This document shows, in pieces, positions 2,244-64,000 of a stretch of DNA of 64,000 nt (the stretch's first letter is position 1; each line of letters opens with the position of its first letter). Position numbers and translations under genes: made by a program. The notes beneath the pieces are model-generated. The model was not told the origin of the DNA, did no database searches, and was given only the letters and a program-made list of their open reading frames with translations. The DNA is from Oculina patagonica (Eukaryota): contig NC_135768.1 in NCBI RefSeq assembly GCF_052425735.1, positions 496,001 through 560,000 on the forward strand, given 5' to 3'.

Positions 2244-2361
2244 GTGAGTACTGTGCAAAGTCTTTAAAGCCATGACATACTGGGAATCCGCGGTTAAATA
2301 ATCCCTATATTACTTAGCTTAGTAGATTACTAAAACATAGTACTTTTAATCGTCAATGCAG

Positions 2362-2582
2362 GTCACTCGAGACGTCACTACAACAGGACCCAAATGTCGT
2401 GTGTAAGAAAACGCAGTCATTCTTCCAAACAAAAGAGGACCTTTGCAAATCCAAGCCGGAGCTGATTTCCACCGTCCTTGACGGCATGGACGTGTCCGTC
2501 GAAGAGTGTCAGTGGCAGTTTAGAAACAGGCGATGGAATTGTTCGACGTCAAAGAATTCTGTCAAGAAAATTCTTCGTTACG
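2362..2582 (+). CDS. Wnt6: Wnt6 exon 2
   Basis: Acceptor tgcag; QDPNVVCKK...ECQWQFRNRRWNCS matches the Wnt6-type DPNxxCxK N-terminus; donor GTGAGT at 2583 (phase 1). Confidence 0.9.
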
Positions 2583-2767
2583 GTGAGTTTGAATGCACGC
2601 CAACTAAGTTTGTTGTTCCGGTCACACTTTACAAACTTTGCATGAGAATTGTACGTTCCGCGCGCGTGTTGCTTGATCGCACAACCTGAAAAACCGCACC
2701 ATCGACAGCGATGACTAAGCAGTTGTGAAGTTTGACACGTTCAACTCAGCTTGTAGTTCTTTTTCAG

Positions 2768-3126
2768 ACTATAGGGAGACGGCGTTCATCTATGCCATCA
2801 CATCAGCCGGGATAACCTTTTCTGTCACGCGTGCATGCAGTATGGGTCATCTTCAGCAATGTGGATGTCGCAAGGTAACTCCACCGCCGCAACAAGTCCT
2901 TTCCAACAACGTCATTCCATCGTATCCCCGAAACGAGTACCCCCCTACAGACAACCACCTTCCCAATCAGGCTTTCCCCATCGGAGAGAACGACCAGTTC
3001 GAGTGGGGAGGTTGCAGCGACAATATTCAGCACGGCTACGAGATTTCGCAACAATTGATGCAAGAGGACAAGAGCAGCGATGGCCGTTCCATGATCATCA
3101 AGCACAATAATGAGGCAGGGCGACTG
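2768..3126 (+). CDS. Wnt6: Wnt6 exon 3
   Basis: Acceptor ttttcag; DYRETAFIYAITSAG..TRACSMGHLQQCGC, Pro-rich insert, WGGCSDN, HNNEAGRL; donor GTAAG at 3127. The ACSMG motif and D-x-RETAF are Wnt6-like. Confidence 0.92.
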
Positions 3127-4626
3127 GTAAGGTAAAGCATTTCCGTAGTGGTACACCACACTTTGTCTTGACTTCCCAAAGCCCCGTCCATTTCTCACTT
3201 GTATAAACAACAAACCTCTTATGGCGCGTTGTCATCTTAGTTCTTTGCGTTCCGGTCCTTAACATGGCATTGTCGTTGTGGAACTCTTAAATTAATCAGC
3301 CAGACAGCGAAGCATCAAACACACTCGTAACAAGACAGAGCCTTTGTGGAAAGACCGTGAAAGCAATTGTCATGCAATTATTGCTAAGTAATAAGCTTGT
3401 TTAGAGTTAACGAGGTCAGAAAAACATGCATGTATTCTTTGGGATTCCATGGCACTTGAAACGTGCGCCAGACGGTTAGGGCAATAATTAAAAACAGATT
3501 TTTGTGATCATAGTATAAAGCGCTCGCTTCATTTTGTCTCGCCTTTGGTGGTATCGTTTATTTCGAGATGATCCTACAATTTTGATTAAGGATTAAGCTC
3601 TGATAACAACATTGGGTGTTAAAGAGACTAACGTTTGCATGCGAAAGTGCGCCACCTTTGGGCTTCCGGCGGGAGCAAATTGTTTTCGGCTGCTAATGCC
3701 TTTAAGACGTTTCACAGAGATGCCGATAAGCCACCTAAGAGTAAAGAAGACAAAGCATAGCTCGAATGCAAGTGGCGTGAAGAAACTTAATTTGTCACCT
3801 ACACCGCTGCTCAAACAATTAACACGAAGCCGTCCAATCTTGATGTTAATTTCTCACGAAGAAAGACTAAATTACATATACGCCTTCCACTAATCACTGA
3901 ATTTGTTATATTTGCATACCTTTTGTGGCATCTTATCCCTTTGTTTACACATAAATAGAATGAGTTAACAGTGTAGCTTTAATTTTTGATACCTTAGGCG
4001 GTATTATCCAAAACAAGCCGACAAACAAATGTTTTCACTGTCGAGTCTAAATGTTTAACCCTAAAAGGAAAATAGAAAGATGGTTCCATGCTAACACAAT
4101 TCATTAAAGCGACGGCATTTTTTCCCTAGGACGTCTAAATGCCTCAGTTTGTTTTAATCAGTTCTTCACACCATCGTATTAAATCTTCACAGGAATTTAA
4201 TTTTCTAGTGTAAACTTTATTGACAGAGTGGTTAATTCAATTTTGACAGTTTATCTTACAAGTGGGACTGTGAAAGACAAGTGCCCCCAACAGTTGGCAG
4301 GTTGACATGAACGAATTTCCACCACAAATATTTGTGCTTCGTTTGTAGTAAGCCCCTATTTTTGTCCTTTCTAATAGTTATCCACAACATTCACCCGACC
4401 GTGAAACAAATACTTTGATTCGAACAAAGGCGCCGCAACTTGTAAAGACAACAGCCCCATCGGAAAGTGATAGCTTTAAAACTTTGAAACGTAACTCGCG
4501 AAAAAAGATAATTCCCGCGATAAAATTAATCCAGCATGCCTGAGATAACCTCACTAGATCTAGATTAATCTCGAGTAAGTCAACGACAACTTAAACGTAA
4601 TATCTGGTTTCTTTTGTTTTTCCCAG

Positions 4627-5088
4627 GCGGTCAAGCTTTACATGCAAAGAGAATGCAAATGCTATGGTCTCTCGGGCTCTTGCTCTGTGAAAACGTGTTG
4701 GGAAAAGATGCCGCACTTTAGAGATGTAGGTGATAGATTGAAAGCCCGTTTTGATGGTGCTATTAAAGTGATTATTAGCAATAATGGCGACAAGTTGATC
4801 AAAGAAGGAGAAACAATAAAGCCTCCAACAGAACTCGATTTGGTGTACACCACAGAGTCCCCAAACTTTTGTAAAGAGGACCCGTATTACGGTTCTCATG
4901 GAACTGTGGGCAGGCAGTGCAACGACACGTTTATGGGAGTGGGCGGATGCCAGTTGCTCTGCTGCAACCGAGGAGCACGAATGAAAAAAGTAGTCATAAC
5001 TGAAAATTGCCAGTGTCGATTCCTGTGGTGCTGCACTGTGAAATGCAAGAAATGCCGAAGAGAGCAAGAAGTACACACTTGTGAATGA
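4627..5088 (+). CDS. Wnt6: Wnt6 exon 4 (spliced CDS 1110 nt, 369 aa)
   Basis: Acceptor tcccag; CKCYGLSGSCSVKTCW, LVYTTESPNFC, LLCCNRG, ENCQCRFLWCCTVKCKKC; TGA stop. Confidence 0.93.
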   Translation, partial: AVKLYMQRECKCYGLSGSCSVKTCWEKMPHFRDVGDRLKARFDGAIKVIISNNGDKLIKEGETIKPPTELDLVYTTESPNFCKEDPYYGSHGTVGRQCNDTFMGVGGCQLLCCNRGARMKKVVITENCQCRFLWCCTVKCKKCRREQEVHTCE

Positions 5089-32851: not shown

Positions 32852-33346
32852 TTAGTTGCACCTATGAACCACGTGCCTCGATCGACAATTCTGACATTTT
32901 ACCTTACAGCACCAAAAGAACCGACAATTACAAAGTTCTTCCACATCACTTTCACTCGTTGTGAAACCTCTCCCGCAGCACATTAAATCACACCCATCCG
33001 TCCCGAGGGACGTGTTATTGCACAGACGTCCCTGTGTCCCGAGGGATCCAGTATCGGGATCTCGCTTACAAAAATTGGGCGAATCTTCGTAGTAAACCAA
33101 GTCTGACTGTGTAGGGGGCTTGTGCATTGTATTTTTGGGACGAAACGCTGGTTTTCCTTTCCTTGTATTATGACCATTTCGATTACTGTTCTGTTCAAAT
33201 TCCACCATGGAAGCGCTGTCAAATTTATCTTTAAGCACCTCACCAATTTTTCTGAAGTCAGCCAGTCGTTTCCAACAGGTACGAACAGTGCAAGCTTCCG
33301 ACACTCCATGACATTTACACTCTCTCACCACGTTTTCTCTTACAGC
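32852..33346 (-). CDS. Wnt1: Wnt1 exon 4 (spliced CDS 1095 nt, 364 aa)
   Basis: Acceptor ttttaag; ECKCHGVSEACTVRTCWKRLADFRKIG, LKDKFDSAS, HKPPTQSDLVYYEDSPNFC, CNNTSLGTDGCDLMCCGRG. HKPP..DLVY and CTVRTCW are Wnt1/wg hallmarks. Confidence 0.92.
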   Translation of the reverse strand, partial: AVRENVVRECKCHGVSEACTVRTCWKRLADFRKIGEVLKDKFDSASMVEFEQNSNRNGHNTRKGKPAFRPKNTMHKPPTQSDLVYYEDSPNFCKRDPDTGSLGTQGRLCNNTSLGTDGCDLMCCGRGFTTSESDVEELCNCRFFWCCKVKCQNCRSRHVVHRCN

Positions 33347-33504
33347 CTTAAAAAGAGAAGATAGCACGCTGTCAGATCTTGTAAAAAAGTGAAAACAAAA
33401 CAACTTGTACATGTTGCTTTATAGTGGTCATGCACTTAGCTTCGAGATAGCTACGTTTTACAGGCATGCCACTGAAACAGAGAACATAAATATTTTAGAT
33501 AACA

Positions 33505-33691
33505 ATACCCGGTTAACAATCCCAACTGGCTGGAGGTTAGACAGACCAGTTGGCTATATCCAAAGCGTGACCGAGGATTTAACTCGGGACGACCGAGAAC
33601 AAATCAAGCTAGTGGTTGGATGGAGGGATTGAGCCCGGGACCTCCGGATTACAACCCCAGCGCCCTAAATCACTCGGCTACGCTGCCTCCT
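33505..33691 (-). mobile_element. tRNA-derived SINE in Wnt1 intron 3
   Basis: Head GGAGGCAGCGTAGCCGAGTGATTTAGGGCGCTGG..GGTCCCGGGCTCAATCCC with degenerate A and B boxes. Confidence 0.7.
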
Positions 33692-35361
33692 TGCGCGGAA
33701 GATAATTAAAAACAATGGTAATTGCAAACGACAACGAGTACAGGTACGGTAACAAGCAAGGGAACATGGTTATTTCACGACGCAAAACAGTCGTTTTTTC
33801 TTATTTTTTTAAGGGTTTTAGTAAAAAAAGTTTGTCGGATGTTCCTCGGGTGAACAAACGAGCGGGAAACAGCAAATAGTTTTGCTACCTTGTTGCGCAA
33901 ACCGAAAAAACATTTCACAGGAAACTAAAAGATGCAACAAATACGCGATATTATAAACATCAACTAACCCTTAATTAATTAACCCCACAGTCAACGTATA
34001 AACTCCGTTTACAGGTTTTTTTTCTGGAATACTGGTCTCTAAAAAGTTACATAGTAACAGTTGGAAGAATTTTCAATTTTGTGGCAGAACTCTTCGGACT
34101 AAACTTTATGATTCTATTTTGCCAAAGTGGTTAGTTCAGGGCACAGTTCGTTTCTGAAGATAAAAACGAAGTTGTAAGAGGTCTAGGAAAGGGACGTGAA
34201 ATGATTAAAAGAGGCCGGCACACGATTCAGTCGGTCAGTTTCAATCCAGTGCCGTTTCGCTATTATTATTATAACTGGGCGGTTTGTGTGTATTACGTAA
34301 AAAGGACTCGGAAGCTCTGATAATAATGCCGGGCGGCAAATTGAGGTCAGACATTCGTCGGCGGCTCGTACAGAAATTGTTACGGTAAAAGTGGAATTCA
34401 TTTATTGTGTTCCAACGGTATGGAAATTTTAGTAGTAAGCCAATCTATGGCACAACCAGACATATTTCTCTTCAAAACATTTCAGCAGACACCGTGGGAA
34501 ACAGATCAAAACGGTGTCGCCCACAATAAACGCAAATTAATCGCCGGCGAAAAGCCGCAATTCTGAAATAATAGATAATAACTTTACGTGCGGGTTTCCA
34601 GCAATTAGTCTAACGTTGTTTCGTGGGAAACCGCGATAAAGAAGTTTACCACAGACTTTCTCATTACAATAATTCTCCCCCAGAATAAAACGATTTCGAC
34701 AAAGGCTTGCCGCTAACGAAGGAACGTGCTAGCTGAAACACAAAGAACTGACAAACCTCGCGTATAACGTTTCGGTTCTAGTTTAAAATACTAATTCTCT
34801 TACTAAGTGCTTGCAATACCGTTCGTTTACCTAAGTTCGGAGAATTTGGCGGCACATCAGGCTAATATCCCTTAGTACTAGTTGATGATTTGATTCACTC
34901 TAATCACCTGTTTGCTAAGCTTGATGATGTTTTGATAGGGAGAAAAAGGTACATGGTCAATCCGTGTTCGGTGTCAGAATTTTCTCTCAGTCCACGATGA
35001 AATTTGTCCTACTCTGTGCACTTATTCCCCTGCGAAGCAGTACTTAAAAAAGACAGGATGCTTTTCAAAAAATACAAGTTAAAAAAAAAACACTGAGTAA
35101 ACGAGCTATTCAAAACTTCCTTTTACGTAAGCTGTACAAATACAGATGGCCTTAGCCTACCGCTTAGACCAACTTAAATTACTTTTTCTAATAAACGATC
35201 GGTCGGAAAGCATTTGTTCATAACCAAAAAGAGATTCACTCGTCGCCTGGGGCTACGGCTTTTCTTGCCGTTCATTGCGGCTTGTTTCGCGATTTTTTTC
35301 CTGGTAGTGTTCAATTAACTCAATATTTCACATTGACGCAAAAGAAGTAAAAATAACTCAC

Positions 35362-35627
35362 AGCTCTGCCTGCTTCGTTGTTGTGCAAATTCACTAAAGC
35401 CCGAAAGTCTCGGCCTTTTTCTCCTGCGTCAACAAACTTCCTTGAGAACTGATCGGCAAAATGGACGTTGTCGCTACAACCTCCCCATTGCCATCCTTCG
35501 TTGCTAACTCCTTTATATCTGCTGTCACATCCACAAGCCGTCAGCTTGCCTTCGCTACAAGCTCTAGCAATGGAGTGTGATACACCAGCCGCTGTAATTG
35601 AGTAGGCGAATGCTGTTTCCCTGCAAG
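35362..35627 (-). CDS. Wnt1: Wnt1 exon 3
   Basis: [57 protein letters not shown]; tttcag acceptor, GTGAG donor. Confidence 0.93.
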
Positions 35628-37544
35628 CTGAAACAGAAAAGTGCGCGTTAATACCTTGCACTGCATCTCCCCGGCGTATTACGCTCTTTCACTCTACGAG
35701 TGACAAAGTTCAAAGTTGAGACCGAAATCAAAAATTCTTTGACAAATACTAAAAAAAAACATTACTAGATGAAAGTGCTGTTCATTAGCTTTCATTTGAA
35801 TGGCCACACACCATGGTAAGATCCAAAGGCGCAGAAGTTAAAATCCTACTACATATAATCGACTTAAGGTTTGACCCGCTGTAGCGGAGTGAAAAGGTCA
35901 ATACGTGCACGAAATAGTCGGATTCAAGATTTTATTGCTCTCAACATCTCTCAATTACTTGTAATTGAAGCTCTACAAATGATTTTAGTGAAAGCAGCTC
36001 TAAGTTACAATCTTCACATGACGGAATGCTCACAGAATCATGCAGGACAAAGAGGGGTATATTCAATGACCATCGGTGAGGACAAATCTGCCGTCCTCTA
36101 AACATAGTCTCTAAAAAGAGTTTCTTCTCGTTAAAACAAATTAAAGGAACAATCTTTAGGGCTAGATTATCAATCAAATTGTGAGATACGCAAGCCGACG
36201 CGCACTGAGGGGACGAGACAGTGTCGGCTTCGACGAGAGTAGAAACGAGCTGAGTTAACGGAGGTGGAGTTTCGATCGTTGTTTGTTCAAGAACTTTGTC
36301 TCCTAGAGTTCAGTTTGAGCAACGCTAAGGGCTTAGCGCTTAGCCTTGTTAATTTAAGCAGAACAGAAACCTGGCAATTAAGTTTGCTATATGAATCCAA
36401 CGTTGAAAGTTTTAGTTGGTGACTCTTTACTCTTATATCAGTAGGACTAATGCGAGGAAAATTAAAGAAAAATGTTATTAAAAATAGGTAGACTGATTGA
36501 TACTGGTTTGGAAAACTTTGGTAATATGTTACCTTAATAGATTTTAACCGCGTTATATCGCAGGTTATTCTTGATTGACTTAAGGTCAAGTTCCGATATA
36601 CATTTTTCTATTTATGTTGCACGTATCTTTTCAAGAACGGCCAGTTTCATAAAGAACCAAGTATTGTAGAGATTAGCGTTTACATGACGAAAATTTCGCA
36701 TATGCCAAATGTCCATAAATAAATCGCTGTATACTGAGTCATACAATAAGTATATTGCTGCCCGCTGCGTGGGTTGTACATGACATTGATATTTAACGAC
36801 CAGACTAAGTTGAATATCCGAGTAGTCTTGCCTTTTTTTCATTCCTTACGAGCGCAAGAAATTTGAGAAGTCAGCCATCTTTTGACTTATGTTGTCGAAA
36901 AAAGGCTTTCTTCGAGTGTAACAATTAAATGGAGTCGAAGTTTTTTTCCCTTCGTTTATTGAGATTTGACGTCTTCCTTTTTGAACGTTGAAACGCAATT
37001 TTACAATTAAAGGAGTCCCAGTTAATCAATTTAACAAAACCTACGACATTCAACGATTCTTCTGCAAACATTGTTGAAACAGACTGAGAAAGCTATGCAT
37101 TGTACTCAGACGTATGTATCTTTTTCAAGTGCTCAAGCTAACGTTAAAAATCGTTCTTTAAACAAGTGTCAACAAAATGCACGAACGAATTGCGGAAATA
37201 GCAGTTTATCGCGTAGAGAAACATATTAAACATTTGACAAGCGTTTTCCGCCATTTCAAACAAAGGTGAAGAAATAGTGTGAGTGATCTTCCTTAAATAC
37301 AGTAAAAATTTGAAAAAAATATAAATTGCCCCCAAAAAACACGAGATTTATACGATGAATGTGGACTAGGTTTGATTACCTTTTTGCTTTAATCAAAAGG
37401 AAACGCTTAACCAAAACAACTATTTAAGTACAGAACGAAATCGTGTATGACATCAAATGAATGGCGTATTTTGTGTCGTGAACGAGAAGGCCTTAATAAG
37501 AAAATATAGTAAAAATCACGAAAAGAACGCGAAAATTAACTCAC

Positions 37545-37792
37545 CTATTTTTACAATTTTCCCAAAAACATTTTCAGGACTATGAGCGGAACAATTCCAT
37601 TTTCGATTTTTGAACTGGTATTGACACTGACTGATAGAGAACTTTGCGCCGAGTCCAATGTAAGGAACCAGTTCGGGGTATTTCCGACACAAGCGTTGCT
37701 GCTTTGGTGTGACAGGTTTCACTCCGTTAGCGGGAGAAAGTTGGAAATTATAGTTGTCTTGAGGCTTCGATGAACCATCTACGCCGAGGTTC
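37545..37792 (-). CDS. Wnt1: Wnt1 exon 2
   Basis: KQQRLCRKYP..QCQYQFKNRKWNCS..VFGKIV; ctttag acceptor, GTGAG donor. Confidence 0.9.
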
Positions 37793-37880
37793 CTAAAGAG
37801 AAGGGAAGCAAAATGGGGTTAGTTTACGTTGTTTAACGTTGTGACAACATCATAATCAGGAAGTGTAATTAAAGACTTAC

Positions 37881-54800: not shown

Positions 54801-55283
54801 CCCTGGCAAAGCAATCTTAGTTTCCGGTAACTCAGCTGAAATGTCCACTGAATGTCACACCACGCACTTTGCTACGTAACACGTTTTAGTTCAGTGAGCT
54901 ACGACGTTTGAGATTCAAGCACGATTGTTTGGTGGCGAAATTGTTATGGAAATTCTACGTAGATTCAGTTGACATGTCGTGTAACACGAAGCCTTGTAGC
55001 AAGCCATGAGGTGAAAAGTTGTGTGTTTGTGCATGATGAGATATCAAGTTTTGAAATCAAAGTTTTAACATTAACATGGACAGCGAAGTCGACGAAAGCA
55101 GTGACTGCTTCTGTCAATTATGCAGCTTGGATTTTACGACACGAGGAGTAAGTTCAAGATTTGCTTTATCAAACTAGTTTTGTACATCACACGAATTGTA
55201 TTTGCTATGCTTCATTTCTTTGCTTCGAAATATGCAACTGTCGATCCATATTTCGGGGATTGTGTACAGAGTTTGTAAGGTTA

Positions 55284-56281
55284 CAGTCTGTTGCCCAGTT
55301 TCCGGCCACTTTAGTTTGCAATCGCTATAACTTCTCATTTATTCAAGGAAAGTTACTCAGTTTTTGTTCAAAGATAGTTCATTTACTTACCTTAAAAATA
55401 TACAAAGATTGGCTGCGCTCGACAAGTATTGAAGAAATTATGCCATTTTTTGCAAAACTAGTAAGTTGCCCAGTTTCCGGCCAGGTGTTCCAGTTTCCGG
55501 CCGTCGAACTAAAACACATTTTTCCCTGCAACCGCTCGACTTTAACCGACTTGTCAGTGCCTTGGCAAACGAATAGCAAGTTTCAATATCAGTTTATTCG
55601 ACTTTGCTTTCTCGTCTGCCGTTTTACGGAACATTTCCTCGTCAATGACCCGTTAGCGTTTCGTTCGCTTATTAGGATATATTGGCAGTGTATACATATA
55701 AATGTTGTAGTTTATCACGCTATGCTTGCTTTAGCTGCTTTTGTACTCTTTGCTACATTTTCATTTCATTAATTTCTCGAGCAGGAGATACTAAATTTCA
55801 GTTATTTCACTTAATAAACATGATTTTGAACAACATGCTACTTGGTGGCCGGAAACTGGCACAGCGAGTCCAAATCTTTGTTCAAACTCTGACTTCTGGA
55901 ATTCAGAAACAGCTGAATTCTGGCTTGTGATGACAGAACCCCTAATTAGTTTCATCTTTACTCTAAATTATGTCAAAAAATTACGAAGCTTCTCGAAACA
56001 TTTCCTACGAAATGAGCTCTTTGTTTATGTACGGTAGCTTTGATGTGCAGTGAAAAGCGCAAAAATTAGTCGCTAAATGTTTACTCGCGTAAACAAAGCT
56101 CAACCTTGCTCGGCCGTTTCTTGTCCCAAAAGCCTGCCAAAACCATCAATTTGTAGCTGAAATGTTCCTTTTCTTGTTGCAAAGGTTCGGTGGACGAAAA
56201 TAAAACATATCTACGAGAATAACCGACGAATATATTTTTTGGCCGGAAACTGGTACCGGCCGGAAACTGGGCAACAGACTG
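55284..56281. mobile_element. ~1 kb TA-target non-autonomous Tc1/mariner-type element
   Basis: TA|CAGTCTGTTGCCCAGTTTCCGGCC ... GGCCGGAAACTGGGCAACAGACTG|TA; internal repeats of CCAGTTTCCGGCC. Confidence 0.88.
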
Positions 56282-56968
56282 TATCTGTTAGATGGGGTCT
56301 TTATTTACAAGTGGATCACACAGGCACAAAACACTGTATATTGTTTCGTCTGGATCAATTGTTCGTTTTGTCTGTCAAGCTTATCAAAACAGCGTGAGTT
56401 CGTGAGTAGATTATTCTGATAATCTGGTATTTACGAAATGTCAAGAAGTTATATATCAATTTTTGGTAAGATTGTCAATTTCAAGATTCGAATATTTTAG
56501 AAAACGGTTCTCTCAACAAGCAGTGACTCTAGAATTGACTGATCAGTTCGAATAACACATTGTTATTATTCTCTTCCTCAAATTATGATCAGATTGGAGA
56601 GAACAAGTTAAAAAAAAATCTGTTGAATTAGCTAAGAATTTTAAAAAATATATTGCTTGTTCAGTAACCTTGACCTTGGCTAACTGTCTTGCACACAGCA
56701 GTTTGAAATTTGTACCACGAGCCTAAGGATGCAAACACTGCATAAGCTCGAGGATAAATAGTAAATCCATGACTATAAGCTCAGTTATATCCAGGGTGCA
56801 TTCCATGGGACTCTCATGCCAAAGACACACCAAGATTTTAAAGGATTAAGGAGTGAAGTAGGCAAGATCTTTGGCATAACCTGCACAGAATGCAGCGTGG
56901 TGTACTGTTCATGTCTGAGAATCTGACGTCAAATAATTTTTATAAAATATGATTCCTAAGAATGTACT

Positions 56969-57126
56969 CCTGGCCCCAGTTGTTCAAAGGGTGGATAATG
57001 CCATCCACTGGATAAATCACTATCCGTTGGATAGCGTCCATGTAGTTTGTTTTGTCAACACTTATCCGCTGGATAGGCATTTATCCAGTGGAAAACGTTA
57101 TCCATCCCTTGAACAACTGGGCCCTG
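56969..57126. mobile_element. Palindromic MITE
   Basis: GGCCCCAGTTGTTCAA..GGATAA.. / ..TTATCC..TTGAACAACTGGGCCC. Confidence 0.8.
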
Positions 57127-58413
57127 ATGTACAAGGGCAAAAGATTTTACCAACTTTGTAGTTGCAAGGGGTTACATTTGCTGGAAAGTGTGGAGCCGTT
57201 TTCTTGTTCATACTTTTTTGCAGACAAATGTATAGAAACCCAAAAATGTGACTACATGCATGTTGTCTGTATTTTTAGAGGTCAAGTTTGTAAATTTTGA
57301 TCCCTTCAGGACCAAGTGATCTTTCTGTAAGAGGAAAATAATTATGTTATGGAGGTAGACTTGATGTGAATTTTGAATCGGTCTCTCTGTGTGACCAAGT
57401 GACCTGTCTGTAATATGGAGATTTGTATATTATGGCCAATGATTTTCTGTTCAATACATGTATGTCATTTTATTTTTATAAGTGATGTACATGTCAGTAG
57501 TGTTTGGTAAACCATTCAGTGAGCAACTTAAAATAAGTTTTACAATAACTGATAAATAAAACATAGTCACCATATTGAAAAGAATTACAATTTATTTAAC
57601 CAACCAAATGCGTATAAATTTAAGTTTTATTTAACAAATGCACCTGCACAGTTAAATTTTATGTCACAAATAATATAACTCTAATCAGTTAAAAAGCCAT
57701 GTTTATCCAGGTGTAAAATGAACAAAACCATGCTTTACTGTTTTTTTTACTGTCTTGAGAAATCTTTTCTCTTGCAACCTAAACTTATTTTGTGTTGTCA
57801 AATGCTGATTGTTTTTTATAGTATATCTGTACATTGGCTTTGCCATCTCTGTGACTAAAGTAGAGAAAGTTTTGCCATTTCATTAATTTAGGTCTCTCGA
57901 ATATTACGTTCATGAACCATTGAACCATTCATAATAACAAAGTTGACTGCATCCATGAACACAGAAATAGAGTTCATAATCTTGACTCTCCTGGACCAAG
58001 TGAACTGTTTTTTTAAGTAAATAAGACTTCAAGTCCAAGTGACTCCATCCAAAAATTAACAATTTACTATCCATGCTGCTTGCTGTGGTACAGTGTAGTT
58101 CTGTATATTTGTTCAAGTTGTTACATTTATGCACTTATTCTTGGCAAATATCTATTTTGATCAACTATCTCTTTGTCAATGTATTGAAATTTTGAGGTGA
58201 ATTTAGAACTGACTGTGCCTTTCAAGAACACATGAACTCTGCTCAATTTAACTGTTACATTTTTTGCTGCCATTAATCATCTAAGCAGTCCCTCAGGAAA
58301 CAGAAGTTCACTTCAACCAGTTCAAAAGGTTTCATCTGTCAGCTGTGATTGACAGATTTTAATCCATTTTTTTTGTCTCTGTTTATCAAGGTTCGTTGGC
58401 TGTCACTATAATT

Positions 58414-58594
58414 ATGACGGATGACGGCAAGAAAGGCAATAATTGCTTAGGGTTTTGAACTTCAGAGTTTGTGTGTTATTGGGCGCAGTAAAGAGTTCAC
58501 TAGTGAACTGATGTTGAATTATGTTTTCGCAGGAGTTGGAAGAGCACACATGGTCTATGCTACACAATACAAACCTTAACAGAAAACAAGGAAG
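58414..58594 (+). pseudogene. ZNF106: ZNF106-like first coding exon (zinc finger 1), disrupted
   Basis: ATG 58414; TGA 58456; EFVCYW/(R)SKEFTS/SQELEEHTWSMLHNTNLNRKQGR spread over three frames; phase-2 donor GTATGT at 58595 matches the acceptor ending 60536. Confidence 0.65.
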
Positions 58595-59148
58595 GTATGT
58601 CAATTCCACATATCATTTTAAGTTTTAACTTGGTAATCTTACCCTATAAACCCTGTCACTTCCAGAGCCAACTTAGCTGGAGTCAATATTGAGACTTACT
58701 TCAAGGTAAAACAACTATTCAAATAAAAGCTATTACTGCTGCTATCAGTCACTCGTGACCTACAGAGCAAAAAGTCTACATAAAAGTTTGAGTTTTAGTG
58801 GATGTCACTCAATCATCTTTGCTGAAAATGTGAAAATTTACTCAATTTTCACCAAACTCAGGACTACATTGAACGCTGGAATACATCCTAGTTGACCAGA
58901 TGAACACACTTGATAAGTCTGAATTAATTTTTTTTTTTGCAATCATGTTCTATTTATAACAGCATAATTTTCTTCGATAGGCTGACATTTGAGAAAGAGG
59001 CCTGCTTGATTAATTCCAAGGATTCTGACTTCATATATTTTTAATTCTTTTTTTATATTTCTTTTTCATTAATAGTTATATGTTTAGTTAGTGTAATAAT
59101 TATTTAATGGCAGGTCCACACCAGCCTTTATGGTTGCCCTATGAGACC

Positions 59149-59327
59149 NNNNNNNNNNNNNNNNNNNNNNNNNNNNNNNNNNNNNNNNNNNNNNNNNNNN
59201 NNNNNNNNNNNNNNNNNNNNNNNNNNNNNNNNNNNNNNNNNNNNNNNNNNNNNNNNNNNNNNNNNNNNNNNNNNNNNNNNNNNNNNNNNNNNNNNNNNNN
59301 NNNNNNNNNNNNNNNNNNNNNNNNNNN
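59149..59327. other. Assembly gap (N run)
   Basis: 179 N. Confidence 1.
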
Positions 59328-60184
59328 CATGTTTTCAAAAAATTATGGCTGGATTTTCCCACAAATGTATTTTTTATATAATACTCAAAACAAATAAAAA
59401 ACTAAAACCTCAGTTGTAGGTTGTCCACTAAAATTATGTTACTTATTTTGGGCTCTTATGACTGGAAATAGCGTAGTTAAATTTTAGTCTGTTTTTATTG
59501 TAAATATCAATTTTAAGTCTTTTTATTATTATTATTTTTATTTATTTTATGCGTCCCCTGTTAGTAGAGAGTAATTCACTCTCGGCTAGAATTGCTCTGA
59601 CAAATTAATAAAGTTGTTGATTGATTGATTTCTCATTCCTTTGTCACAATCATCAACGGTTGCTCCCATGCATGAAAGAACACAAAAATGTCTGGCAAAT
59701 TTACACACTCACGAAATCATTTTTCTACTTATTTTATTTCTGGTTATGGAACACAAAACAACTTACGTTTTGTTGACTTAAGTAACAAGTTTCAAACACG
59801 TGATTTTAAATGTCCATGGGATTTTGAGATTAGATACAACTGGGAGGTGGAGATGATTGGCATCCACTAAAACTCAAACTTTCGTCTAGACTTTTTGCTC
59901 TGACGGTCGCATGTGATTAATAACTGCTACAGGTAAGCAGTGCATTTAGAAATGTTTGTCATAAAGTGTACAAGATGATTCCACTCTCAGAGTTGCTCTT
60001 TCTTGCTTAGCTCAAAAGTTGTGTCGAACTCTCGCTCAGGAGGGGAAGGACTCCCACATGAAAGAAATGGGGATGCTCTTCCTCTCACTTATGGGCCAAA
60101 ATTACAGAGTTTGGTCTTGCATAGTTTTCAGGACAGAACACCAATATTTTTGGTTTCAAATTTAAATGTTTTCAGTACTTAATT

Positions 60185-60494
60185 GGGAGGCACAGTGGCC
60201 TATTAAATGGTTAGTGCACTGGACTTTTTTAGCCCTGGTCTGGGCCACCATGCTGTGCTGGATTTACTTTCACTGTGCCTTTCCCTACCCAAGTGTATAT
60301 TAATTGGGTACTGGCATATTTGATGCTGTAGATAACCTTGCAAAGAACTACATGTAGCATCCCATCCAGAAAGGGGTGGGGGGTGGGGTGGGGTGTAGAA
60401 ATACTGCGAGTCACTTCACTCAAGCCATGGAAACCAAGATAAGCCTTAGCCTGATGGGCCAGTACACTCTAACACAGTCTTTACCTTACCTTTA
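60185..60494 (+). mobile_element. Degenerate copy of the CORE-like SINE
   Basis: Similar to 45331-45628 (GGGAGGCACAGTGGCC..TAGCATCCCATCCAG..CTTTACCTTACC). Confidence 0.75.
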
Positions 60495-60536
60495 AGGTAT
60501 CCAGTAATTGAACTTTTTTTTCCTCTTTTCTGTTAG

Positions 60537-62880
60537 AGATTGTGTACATCCTTGTAGCCTATGCAAGGAGCAGTTTATTGGACTTTTGGAATTTACAAGT
60601 CACCTACACAGCGATAATCACCAGGAAAAAATTCATCAGTGGCGAAAAGACCAAACAAGAGTGGAGCCCAGATAAACAGCAGCAAGACAGCCCAGACAAA
60701 CAACAACTAAGATTCCCGATATCAAAGAGGAAGATAGGCCACCATCTGACTGGGCCACAGATGATTTGTCAGGTGTGATAGATTTCAGCGATCAAGGTGA
60801 GGAACAAGACATGGGTGACAATCGCTGGGCAAGTGGGCGTGGCAGGGGTTCATCAAGAGGTATACCTAGTCTTTTGGGGGATCCGCCTGCAGTTAGATTT
60901 CCCTACCAAGAACAGCAAGATGTGAGAAGGGGTATGCCGCCAGGCCAGCCATGGCAAAATGGCAGATGGGAGGCAAATGGCGAATATTATGACAGAGACT
61001 TTTCAAATGAGGGTCATCCAATGTGGGATGATGGTCCAAGGGAGCCACAGAGAGTATTCAGAGATGGCCCTTGGTACAATCCAGGGTGGCCAGAAATGAA
61101 CGACACAAGGAACTCTGATAGATGGCAAAATGAAAGACATCTTGGAAATAGAGATGGAGAAAGGTTTTCATCAAGAGACAGTTCCAGACCTTACCCTAAT
61201 GATAACTTCCCCGACAACTATGCCCAAGGTCCAAGGCGAAGAGATTCTTTTGAAGGTGATTCAGAGGCTCGACCACGGTATGAAGGTCAACGACGTGATC
61301 TTAGGGAGAGAATCGGGAATCGTAACAATAACTCGTCACATCCATCCTATAATGGACGACGAGAAATGAAAAGTGTGGTTGGATCAAGTTTCTTAACTTC
61401 AAGAGAAAATGAAGGAAGACCTAATTCTCGAGGTAGCAGGCGTGAAGGTTCTTCAAGTAGAAGAGGGAGGCATGCACCTCCTGACAAACATGACCAAGGA
61501 AGAAGAACTTCACAGGAAACAAACAGAAGAGATTCCAAGGAAAAATCACAACAAAAAACAAGTCCTTCTTCAGAGAGTCCTAGTGGAAAAAGTGGAAGGA
61601 AAAGTAGTAAACCAAGAAAGGTAACACGATCTGAAGAAAAGAAAGATGTCTCTTCCACCAAGGATACTGCTGTTAAAAGTGTTGAGGCCAATTTGCAACC
61701 AGCTAAAGACAATATGTTAGAAAGAAAGAAACAAGAGGAAACTGCGGTAACAGAGAAAGAAAAAAGTGGAACAAAATCTACATCTGCGTCTGCTTCAAAA
61801 TCTACTGTTGGAGGTGAAAAAAATGATAGTAAAATAGAAAAAGCAAATATCGAACCCAGTGACTCGAAACAAGGGACAACATCAACAAAGCCTCTGCCAA
61901 AGAAAGAGATGGAAGATTCCAAAGAGAATACTTCCTCATCAGTAAAAAGAGATTGTTCTTCATTACCCAAAAGGGATTCCCCCTCATCAATCAAAAAGGA
62001 TTCTTCAACATCCAAAGCGAATTCCACCTCATCAGCCAAAGGAAATTCCCTCGCGGATTCCCCTCCAGCAAAACGTAGTCCACCTTCATCCGCCAAAGGG
62101 TATTCACCTTCATCGGCCAAAGGGGATTCCTCTTCATCAGCTAAAGGGGATTCATCTTCATTAACCAAAGGGGATTCCCCTCCGTCTTCCAAAGTGGATA
62201 CCTCTTCATCAATCAAACGCAATCCACCTTCACCCACCAAAGCGGGCTCACGTTCATCGGCCAAAGGGGATTCCTCTTCGTCGGCTAAAGAAGACACTTC
62301 TTCATTAACCAAAGAGGATTCAACACCATCCCTTGAGACAAAAGGAGGCTCTATGATTACAGTTCAGGAGAAGGAAGATCCTGAAAAAGCTTCAAACAAA
62401 CAAAAAGACTCCTTGAGCTCTCTGAAGGACAAAGATAAATCAACAGACTCGTCAAAGGAGAAAGAAGAACTAAATTTACCATTTCATGCGAAAGAAACGT
62501 TAGTCACATCTCTTGACAAGAAAAATAACCTCTCTCAAAACTCCAAGAAGGTAGTAAAAACATTGCCAGAACTCAGTGACGAAAATAATGTACCAATGCC
62601 AAAAGTAGGAGAAGATTATCTGTCATCAACAGGGAAAAAAAATGACCAGGCCTCATCGGCGTCTTATTTCAGTAAAAATACCAGTTCTTCAGTACCAGGA
62701 AGTGGAAAAGAAAAAACAGTTGATAACCAAGCTGCCAACATTTCCAGTAAAAGTAAACATAATGACACAGTAACCTCTTCAGCTACAACCACATCTGGTG
62801 TGGGTTCGTTACCATGGGAACAGCGAGAGGAGGAACTAAGGACTTTGCTTGGCATAAAGAAAGAACCAAAGGATAACGAG
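60537..62880 (+). CDS. ZNF106: ZNF106-like large exon: zinc finger 2, in-frame TAA at 60673, then RG/W-rich and Ser/Lys-rich low-complexity region
   Basis: Polypyrimidine acceptor tgttag; DCVHPCSLCKEQFIGLLEFTSHLHSDNH (C-x2-C-x12-H-x5-H) in the same frame as the 770-aa ORF; donor GAG|GTACTG at 62881. Confidence 0.72.
61925..62330 (+). repeat. Coding 24-bp (8-aa) tandem repeat, consensus SSSSAKGD
   Basis: SPSSAKGD SSSSAKGD SSSLTKGD SPPSSKVD ... SSSSAKED TSSLTKED. Confidence 0.85.
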
Positions 62881-63333
62881 GTACTGTACGTGTACAATGA
62901 TCAAAAGTTCTTAGGACACTTGGCAATAATGACAAAACCCTTGGAAGGGATAAGTGATTGTAAAATTTTTAAAATCATTAAAAAAAAAATTCTCTCTGCC
63001 TCCAAGAAAATTAAAATATTCTGGCTAGGTTGGATGGATAAAAATCAACATTTACTTGGGATGGGGCAGGGAAGGTGAAGAAAACGCTCATCTGTCAGCC
63101 ATCATTAGAAGTGTCCCAAGCCTTCTGACCACCAATGTAGTCGTGATTGCCACACAAAGGGTAGGGTATGACATGGGGTAGAACATGCTTTTAGTTATTG
63201 TTTTGTTAGTCCTACGTACAGATACGTGAAGTTATATCATCCCTCTGGCACATGTTTTAGGTTGCTTTTCTTAACTTTGAACTTGGGCGTTAAAAGGCTA
63301 AAATTTTAAGGGTCGTATATTTTTTCCTTTCAG

Positions 63334-63572
63334 AATCAACAGGACATCACTTCATGTACCGTGTCCAAGTCCAACAAAGTGACATTGGAGAGTCAGACAA
63401 ACCGTGCCGTTTCCAGTAGCAGTATATTTGCAGTTAGCAGCCTGACTTCTGGGTCAAATAAATCCACTACCTCAAGATATGTTCCAGTTGCTTCGCAATT
63501 GTCCTTGTCCCGTCCGCAGTGCAGTTTTGTTCACATTGATGGAGTACAATGTGGTGCTATCACATGGAACAA
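63334..63572 (+). CDS. ZNF106: Next exon of the ZNF106-like gene (Ser-rich); gene continues beyond the window
   Basis: tttttcctttcag acceptor, phase 0 open frame NQQDITSCTVSKS...; 3' boundary approximate. Confidence 0.55.
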
Positions 63573-64000
63573 GTACGTGATGATAGTTTTTGCAATTTTT
63601 TTAAGCAAATTTTTTTAGATGCCGCCATAGGTTATATCTTAAAACGCCTATTGACACCTTCAATACCACACAAAAGTAAGTGACCACAGCTCGTCTCGTT
63701 TCTTGCGCGATGCGTCTCGTCTCTCCTGAGACACGTCTCGTTTCTCTTGACAATTACTAAACGGGCAACATGTATTACACGCAAGAAGCCGGCGCCTGAA
63801 TGTACATGTAATTTGGAAACTTTATTGTATTCTTGAGTTCTTTCCCATTAATCCAACCAAAAATTAGATAACAACTGTTTGTGGAATTCATTGGCGCGTT
63901 GCTGCTTTGGCTTACCCGCCTCTAAGGTTAAGTTTTTTGTAATATTATTCGTCAACACAAACATGAAGAGGTCAAAAACATGACAAAATGAAATCAAAAG

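Follow-up and report, generated by a model that had tools for sequence, protein, structure and literature searches.

ZNF106 is a large nuclear RNA-binding protein which has been studied in vertebrates in connection with motor-neuron and muscle maintenance, and the mammalian protein binds RNA and localises to nuclear speckles or the nucleolus. Here we describe the corresponding gene of the stony coral Oculina patagonica. It begins in a stretch of 64,000 nucleotides (nt), C11:496001-560000, where C11 is a contig of the 529-Mb assembly of this species; we refer to the whole stretch as the window, and positions given without a prefix are counted within it. Judged by its sequence, the locus is the O. 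patagonica orthologue of vertebrate ZNF106. The gene spans about 31 kb, from the ATG at 55076 to about C11:585,300, with the rest of its exons downstream of the window, and it has the architecture of two N-terminal C2H2 fingers, about 2000 disordered residues, a coiled coil, a WD40 propeller and C-terminal fingers. It is an ordinary conserved gene, and the anomaly that remains consists of three frameshifts in the assembled copy together with an intact twin in the sequencing reads. We consider it likely that the assembled copy, an allele or a duplicate, was inactivated recently and that the function is carried by the intact second copy.

The homology to ZNF106 suggested in the first-pass annotation of the window was well supported. 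WD40 exons were searched for downstream and were present, and in BLASTP the WD40 and C-terminal finger part of the protein matched coelacanth ZNF106 (P0080) with 42% identity over 395 amino acids (aa; E=2e-99). In a search of 5.8 billion proteins every top match beyond the cnidarians was a vertebrate ZNF106 (40-47% identity, E 1e-100 to 1e-82), other WD40 proteins reaching 1e-69 or weaker. The fingers that follow the propeller, CKWRECKLNFGVAAHLKNHIREYH...CHWADCGHQFSA, aligned to ...CRWRNCDSFFTA of the coelacanth protein, and the coiled coil VQQLLTIEREEQEQLQNL...LRSLRLSILE, which is the best-conserved block among corals, matched coelacanth residues 1088-1152 (E=6e-7). Pfam detected WD40 above the cut-off (E=3.6e-22). 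Its matches to the fingers were weak and below the cut-off, both in O. patagonica (zf-C2H2_jaz, E=0.009, 16.6 vs 22.6 bits) and in the relative (zf-C2H2_4, E=0.0018), and the 705-aa disordered exon had no Pfam match. The spliced N-terminus (90 aa) aligned column-for-column with the N-termini of corals, sea anemones, an ascidian, the coelacanth and the frog (the Xenopus ZNF106 is P0108); all eight zinc ligands were present and both N-terminal fingers were intact. These two fingers are of the U1/matrin-like C2H2 type, with the linker ..LH..L....KGRD between them. A search of the region for N-terminal homologues returned two transcripts only. The WD40 and C-terminal exons of the assembled copy carry no lesion and are highly conserved. 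There is one locus in the assembly, with exon 3 in single copy, and its forward best matches are ZNF106. Owing to the three frameshifts the assembled copy has no open frame for full-length ZNF106; this weakens the case for a ZNF106 product from this copy but leaves the identity of the locus as the ZNF106 gene unaffected.

The coding part of exon 1 lies at 55076..55147 on the plus strand, as do all exons described below. It reads ATG GAC AGC ... CGA GGA|GTAAGT, which translates as MDSEVDESSDCFCQLCSLDFTTRG, and ends in phase 0 at the GTAAGT donor at 55148. The start codon has A at -3 and G at +4, and an in-frame TAA stands three codons upstream of it. The exon was located when the N-terminal sequences of a full-length coral transcript (P0033) and Actinia tenebrosa LOC116307638 (P0035) were compared by tblastn with the whole window, the match EVDESSDCFCQLCSLDFTTR covering 55085-55144 (E=0.001 and 0.005). 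It is also conserved in L008, a genomic contig of another coral, where exon 1 (MDNVADSSDCFCELCSLEFTTQR|GTAAGT; L008:3071-3127) has an identical donor and lies 2.3 kb upstream of exon 2 (E=2e-8). Exon 1 supplies the Cys pair of finger 1 (TGT 55112-55114 and TGC 55121-55123). The His pair (CAC 58545-58547 and CAC 58563-58565) is supplied by exon 2 (58533..58594), which starts in phase 0, encodes ELEEHTWSMLHNTNLNRKQG plus 2 nt, has the acceptor ttttcgcag and the donor AG|GTATGT, and is kept in four corals with mostly synonymous differences. Spliced together, the two exons give C-QL-C-SLDFTTRGELEE-H-TWSML-H, a canonical C-x2-C-x12-H-x5-H finger.

The 3.4 kb between these exons is intron 1 (55148-58532), and 58414-58532 is its 3' end, with a polypyrimidine tract and the CAG acceptor. 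This segment contains stops in all three frames and is weakly conserved in the alignment with L008. The damage to finger 1 described in the first-pass annotation (a TGA at 58456, a +1 shift near 58483, a Cys-to-Arg change and a 22-nt insertion) falls within this intron, not in an exon, and the apparent loss of the fingers was an artefact of missing the first exon 3.4 kb upstream. A finger 1 rebuilt from 58414-58531 was rejected: it needs four repairs, is unconserved against L008, and the true exon is at 55076-55147. The N-terminus of Nematostella isoform X2 reads "...FFFPQ|ELEEH", where FFFPQ looks like a translated polypyrimidine tract plus CAG, which would put an intron at this position in a sea anemone too. 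An in-frame ATG is found at 58521 of the window, just ahead of the exon-2 acceptor (MFSQ|ELEEH; 58521-58532), and a full-length transcript of a distant coral (L007:1-260) and Nematostella isoform X2 start inside or near intron 1, without the Cys pair of finger 1; isoforms that lack finger 1 and start in the intron may be a recurrent feature. As the start of the O. patagonica protein the ATG at 58521 was set aside, in view of the conserved upstream exon with its good start context and GTAAGT donor.

The proposal that exon 2 is joined to 60537 was confirmed, and this splice yields finger 2, RDCVHPCSLCKEQFIGLLEFTSHLHSDNH. Intron 2 (58595-60536) contains an assembly gap (N) at 59149..59327, which begins 554 nt past the exon-2 donor and ends 1209 nt ahead of the exon-3 acceptor. 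The proteins of relatives and the RNA of one relative pass from ...RKQG to RDC... without an additional residue. In a contig of run X4 (putative RNA of organism B, a relative; the kind of this run is a guess), the last 30 nt of exon 2 directly precede exon 3, the junction lying near position 136 of L010, our name for C11:556400-560700 (window 60400-64000 plus 700 nt beyond). Because exon 2 joins exon 3 directly in the relative, no coding sequence is expected in the gap and the reading frame does not depend on it. Exon 3 (60537..62880; 2344 nt; donor GAG|GTACTG) encodes finger 2 (60553-60621) and then a disordered region rich in Ser, Lys and Arg. Exon 4 (63334..63572; phase 0 to 2; donor AA|GTACGT) joins the next large exon, exon 5, at C11:560068, that is, 68 nt past the window end (L002:68-3786, where L002 is C11:560001-570000). 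In X4 contigs the splices between exons 3 and 4 and between exons 4 and 5 appear as the joints 2481>2956 and 3173>3669 on L010, with GT..AG for the latter, and the NCBI protein ACROYT_G034538 (P0019, 946 aa) reads straight through the exon 4|5 joint. Past exon 5 there are a short exon, a series of WD40 exons and an exon with the C-terminal fingers. The conceptual product, with X at the three breaks, is 2550 aa long and has no further stop.

The first-pass annotation had reported a TAA at 60673-60675 in frame with finger 2 and with the downstream open reading frame (ORF), followed by about 735 open codons, and an exon at 63334-63572. These observations were reproduced, and the open codons were found to end at the donor at 62880. 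Its explanation of the stop as a CAA>TAA change was replaced by a different one. At 60655 the window has a single A where relatives have CGA, so that 2 nt are missing and the frame is shifted (L006, the genomic sequence of the closest relative, GATCAACGACAAGAG vs window GACCAA--ACAAGAG). At 60709..60710 one more nucleotide is missing (CTG CAG AGC in the relative, CTA -AG ATT in the window; L006 CAACTGCAGAGCC vs window CAACTA-AGATTCC), and the original frame is restored. The two deletions sum to 3 nt and flank an out-of-frame stretch of 18 codons which contains the TAA. In the true frame its letters are part of GAT AAA, which encodes the Asp-Lys of SPDKQQ, a repeated motif. The identical letters CCAGATAAACA in the relative are read there as P-D-K, and the adjacent repeat, CCCAGACAAACA, encodes a second SPDKQQ with the synonymous Asp codon GAC; what looked like a nonsense mutation is thus a synonymous Asp codon in a shifted frame. 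The ORFs of the relatives (P0020-P0030) read through this region as ...HLHSDNHQEKIHLWRKDQRQEWSPDKQQQDTPDKQQLQSPDIKEEDRPPSDW..., whereas the window follows the frame of the gene until WRKDQ, continues in another frame (QEWSPDKQQQDSPDKQQL, within a 78-aa ORF at 60542..60778) and is back at PDIKEED.

The third lesion is located about 950 codons further on, in exon 5 and 560 nt past the window end, where one extra G is present in acgGGGc (C11:560560-560562; L002:560-562). The frame of exon 5 switches between L002:550 and 597, and a repeated IDLSxTV motif runs on across the switch; at this place the unbroken 1253-aa ORF of the relative (P0001) reads SIDLSNTARAVGT... In the alignment L006 has none of the three lesions, and the ORFs of more distant corals are unbroken. 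Contrary to what had been proposed, the lesions are therefore not confined to the finger region: both fingers are intact, the break follows finger 2 and the third frameshift is in exon 5.

To compare the assembled copy with sequencing reads, we used L010, a region that covers all three lesion sites and avoids the N gap, and four runs in the form of contigs: X1, a DNA run with the same organism code as O. patagonica; X21, another run with this code; X2, DNA of organism B; and X4. X1 contained two sequence types at near-equal depth across L010 (among the pairs about 23/25, 22.6/19.4 and 20.8/20.9). One of them, the reference type, agreed with the assembly without a substitution or small indel over 379, 526 and 480 nt (1385 nt in total). 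The second type is absent from the 529-Mb assembly. Its divergence from the assembly, seen in introns as well as exons, was about 5% in non-repetitive sequence (14 listed sites over about 305 nt) and reached about 10% within the Ser-rich repeats, and at every listed site it shared its letters with X2 and X4. The indel state of the non-reference contigs was derived from distance-to-contig-end arithmetic: those of X1, X2 and X4 had two additional letters between L010:252 and 280 and one additional letter between 291 and 327, and consequently an intact frame at both exon-3 sites. An X1 reference-type contig with a depth of about 23 crossed both exon-3 lesion sites with all 14 reference letters of the single-nucleotide polymorphisms (SNPs), from which we infer that it carries both deletions. 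A second, intact locus, which the first-pass annotation had considered, was thus not found in the assembly, but a second type with intact frame at both exon-3 sites was found in the X1 reads.

The second type was not restricted to X1. X21 had only non-reference letters, at low depth, and its coverage was limited to exons except for one contig that extended 42 nt into an intron. Metagenome runs, both coral and viral, contained a small share of the sequence words, about as much as organism B, and appear to have only the non-reference type. L006 represents a third, more distant lineage, which has 16 of the 29 listed letters in common.

The substitution pattern of the assembled copy was that of a constrained gene. 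In comparison with L006 the ratio of non-synonymous to synonymous substitution rates (dN/dS) was 0.375 in exon 3, 0.29 in exon 5 and about 0.07 at the finger-2 end. All nine other coding indels relative to L006 are multiples of three (+12, -24, +48, +3, +12, -6, +3, -3 and -3), whereas intron indels are of any length. The assembled copy and the relative had 38 and 20 unique changes, respectively, in exon 3 and 18 and 28 in exon 5, which amounts to no overall rate excess. When changes were polarised with L006 as the outgroup for letters common to organism B and the second type, the own branch of the assembled copy had nine synonymous and seven non-synonymous changes and the other branch five of each. 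There are no nonsense substitutions in the 2550 codons, the introns are kept, and the signature of long-term neutral decay (dN/dS near 1, with stops and indels across exons) was not observed. The copy was therefore constrained by purifying selection through almost its entire history and, if inactive, has become so only recently. Two Wnt genes in the window, at 2318-5085 (plus strand) and 32855-37818 (minus strand), with exons encoding RWNCS, HNNEAGR and CKC.G...KTCW, seem intact; they served as a rough local control for indel errors, and their coding sequence (about 2.5 kb) was free of frameshifts.

The breaks explain the public annotation of the locus. Because of the TAA the NCBI models omit exons 1 and 2 and finger 2, and because the third lesion breaks exon 5 the gene is annotated as two models. 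ACROYT_G034538 starts at ATG 60811..60813, a Met that is also present in close coral relatives (xxMGDNRW), and ends with ...NDETAWY at the exon-5 frameshift, and ACROYT_G034539 (P0034, 1453 aa) covers the remainder; these neighbouring models of one gene are 100% identical to the translation of the locus. The 705-codon open part is likewise 100% identical to "hypothetical protein ACROYT_G034538 [Oculina patagonica]". The annotation therefore presents one ZNF106 of 2550 codons as two "hypothetical proteins" and omits its RNA-binding fingers, which would mislead comparisons of ZNF106 and of coral gene content.

Of the two explanations offered in the first-pass annotation, a young pseudogene and an assembly error, both are still live, and plain decay that extends equally to the downstream exons is contradicted by the clean WD40 exons. 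We think that the lesions are quite probably real on the assembled copy, because the assembly agrees exactly with the X1 reference-type contigs, because any short-read polishing would restore letters that both haplotypes carry, and because the neighbouring Wnt genes and the WD40 exons are clean. If so, translation of the assembled copy, begun at the true ATG, would yield a stub of 90 residues with two fingers. The stop would lie far upstream of many exon junctions, and an mRNA of this kind is expected to be a target of nonsense-mediated decay. The function would then be carried by the intact second copy, either the other haplotype or an unassembled duplicate, which the same DNA contains at equal depth. 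For two or three independent lesions to accumulate, the assembled copy would have to have been sheltered over some period, whether it is a duplicate or a permanently heterozygous haplotype.

A competing explanation, which we regard as unlikely although it deserves serious consideration, is that the three frameshifts are consensus or polishing errors, that the reference haplotype has an open ZNF106 of 2550 codons and that only the annotation is wrong. Several observations speak for this explanation and weigh against an inactivated copy. All three lesions are indels of 1-2 nt, and three frameshifts in a gene otherwise under purifying selection, which also acted on the own branch of this copy, with no other defect in it, are what consensus errors would also produce. 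The sequence contexts are prone to long-read errors: the two exon-3 deletions are in A/C-rich low-complexity sequence, the first of them removes a CpG, and the extra G of exon 5 lengthens a G run beside a CpG. The X1 reference-type contig is presumed, from its SNP letters, to carry both exon-3 deletions, and X1 contains only 75% (0.75) of the sampled exon-3 words. The read support for the extra G in exon 5 is a net one-letter difference in spanning X2 and X4 contigs, which come from organism B, not from O. patagonica. Moreover, a 645-nt X1 reference-type contig over L010:2435-3093 (window 62834-63492, intron 3 and exon 4) had no substitutions but lacked 14 letters that the assembly has in the intron. 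L006 also lacks about 15 letters around an A10 run at 62977-62991, and either a length polymorphism or a minor artefact of the assembly may account for the 14-letter difference. Two further difficulties are of a biological nature: without shelter, a recessive null with two or three independent lesions would not easily persist in a sexual population, and the divergence of the two types is far above ordinary allelic variation. Against errors of the consensus stand the 1385 nt of X1 reference-type sequence without any difference, the additional 645 nt that differ by that single gap only, the contig that spans the two exon-3 sites and has the reference letter at all 14 SNPs, the expected effect of short-read polishing, and the absence of frameshifts from the coding sequence of the Wnt genes and from the WD40 exons.

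A more specific form of the favoured reading, that of real lesions, is that the reference colony has two ZNF106 haplotypes which are several per cent apart and present at 1:1, the assembled one decaying under the shelter of the other. The intact haplotype would then resemble the sequence found in the other samples with the same code and in organism B, and the assembled one would belong to a distinct lineage. O. patagonica is an expanding and largely clonal Mediterranean coral. In this specific form we hold the proposal to be rather improbable.

It had also been suggested that the coral protein has lost its fingers and that a functional product without them starts at ATG 60811. The start of the NCBI model at this position, the presence of the Met in close coral relatives and the roughly 735 open codons are consistent with such a product. 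However, exon 1, exon 2 and finger 2 are intact, with dN/dS of about 0.07 for finger 2, relatives translate straight on from the fingers, and the product from 60811 would still stop at the exon-5 frameshift, ahead of the coiled coil and the WD40 propeller. We therefore find it very hard to accept that the protein begins there. That the breaks are bypassed in expression, by a tiny intron over the TAA, ribosomal frameshifting or RNA editing, is the least credible proposal of all: the exon-3 deletions do total 3 nt and the frame is back after 18 codons, but relatives have no shift at these sites, so that nothing is conserved, the out-of-frame stretch contains a stop, the third lesion is uncompensated, and the only possible GT..AG pairs give introns of about 30-40 nt. 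Two such candidate introns, one of 38 nt at the exon-5 shift and one of 30 nt at the TAA, were dismissed because they are too small and because relatives do not have them.

Some neighbouring features were seen downstream of the window. A gene similar to MFS or monocarboxylate transporters, as judged by reading of its ORFs, is nested within a WD40 intron on the minus strand (L002:7648-9768; C11:567648-569768) and has two long exons of 214 and 222 aa; a paralogue on the plus strand is located about 25 kb further on (L005:5606-7434). Downstream of ZNF106, a long ORF with endonuclease-like and reverse-transcriptase-like parts (L003:8291-10000 and L005:1-1890; C11:588291-591890) looks by eye like an apparently intact retrotransposon of the type without long terminal repeats.

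With real lesions, the assembled copy would be either a duplicate in decay or a null allele under shelter, and it would hint at unusually divergent haplotypes in the reference colony. Should this hold beyond the locus, it would point to a hybrid origin, or to hyper-divergent and permanently heterozygous haplotypes, of the reference colony or of the species. Many "broken genes" in the primary assembly would then be sheltered null alleles, which would affect how each of them is read.

The cnidarian "uncharacterized proteins" of Actinia tenebrosa (P0035) and Nematostella vectensis (LOC5514836, P0036) and of the coral transcripts P0033 and P0006 have end-to-end the same architecture as the O. patagonica gene, but their ORFs are unbroken, in contrast to the assembled O. 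patagonica copy. P0033 and the Actinia protein have both fingers intact, as in the spliced O. patagonica N-terminus, whereas P0006 and Nematostella isoform X2, which start inside intron 1, are without the finger-1 Cys pair. Like the coral protein, vertebrate ZNF106 (coelacanth and Xenopus) has two N-terminal C-x2-C-x12-H-x5-H fingers with the EH..S.LH and KGRDC.H.C..C motifs, a long disordered middle, a coiled coil, and a WD40 propeller followed by C-terminal C2H2 fingers. The coral protein differs from it in being longer (about 2550 aa vs 1300-2000 aa), in a disordered region that is not alignable, in the three frameshifts that break its assembled copy, and in the presence of about ten [IV]DL[SN] motifs that are lacking in the vertebrate protein. 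These motifs, which we take to resemble SUMO-interaction motifs, are found in exon 5 (L002:400-1200 and beyond) as IDLSSTV, IDLSTTV, IDLSGTV, IDLSATV, IDLNETV, GLIDLSSTSY and GLIDLNTT; motifs of the [IV]DL[SN]xT type occur in 6-7 copies in other corals, are rare in sea anemones and are absent from coelacanth ZNF106. Thus, the end-to-end architecture of ZNF106 is conserved back to the cnidarians.

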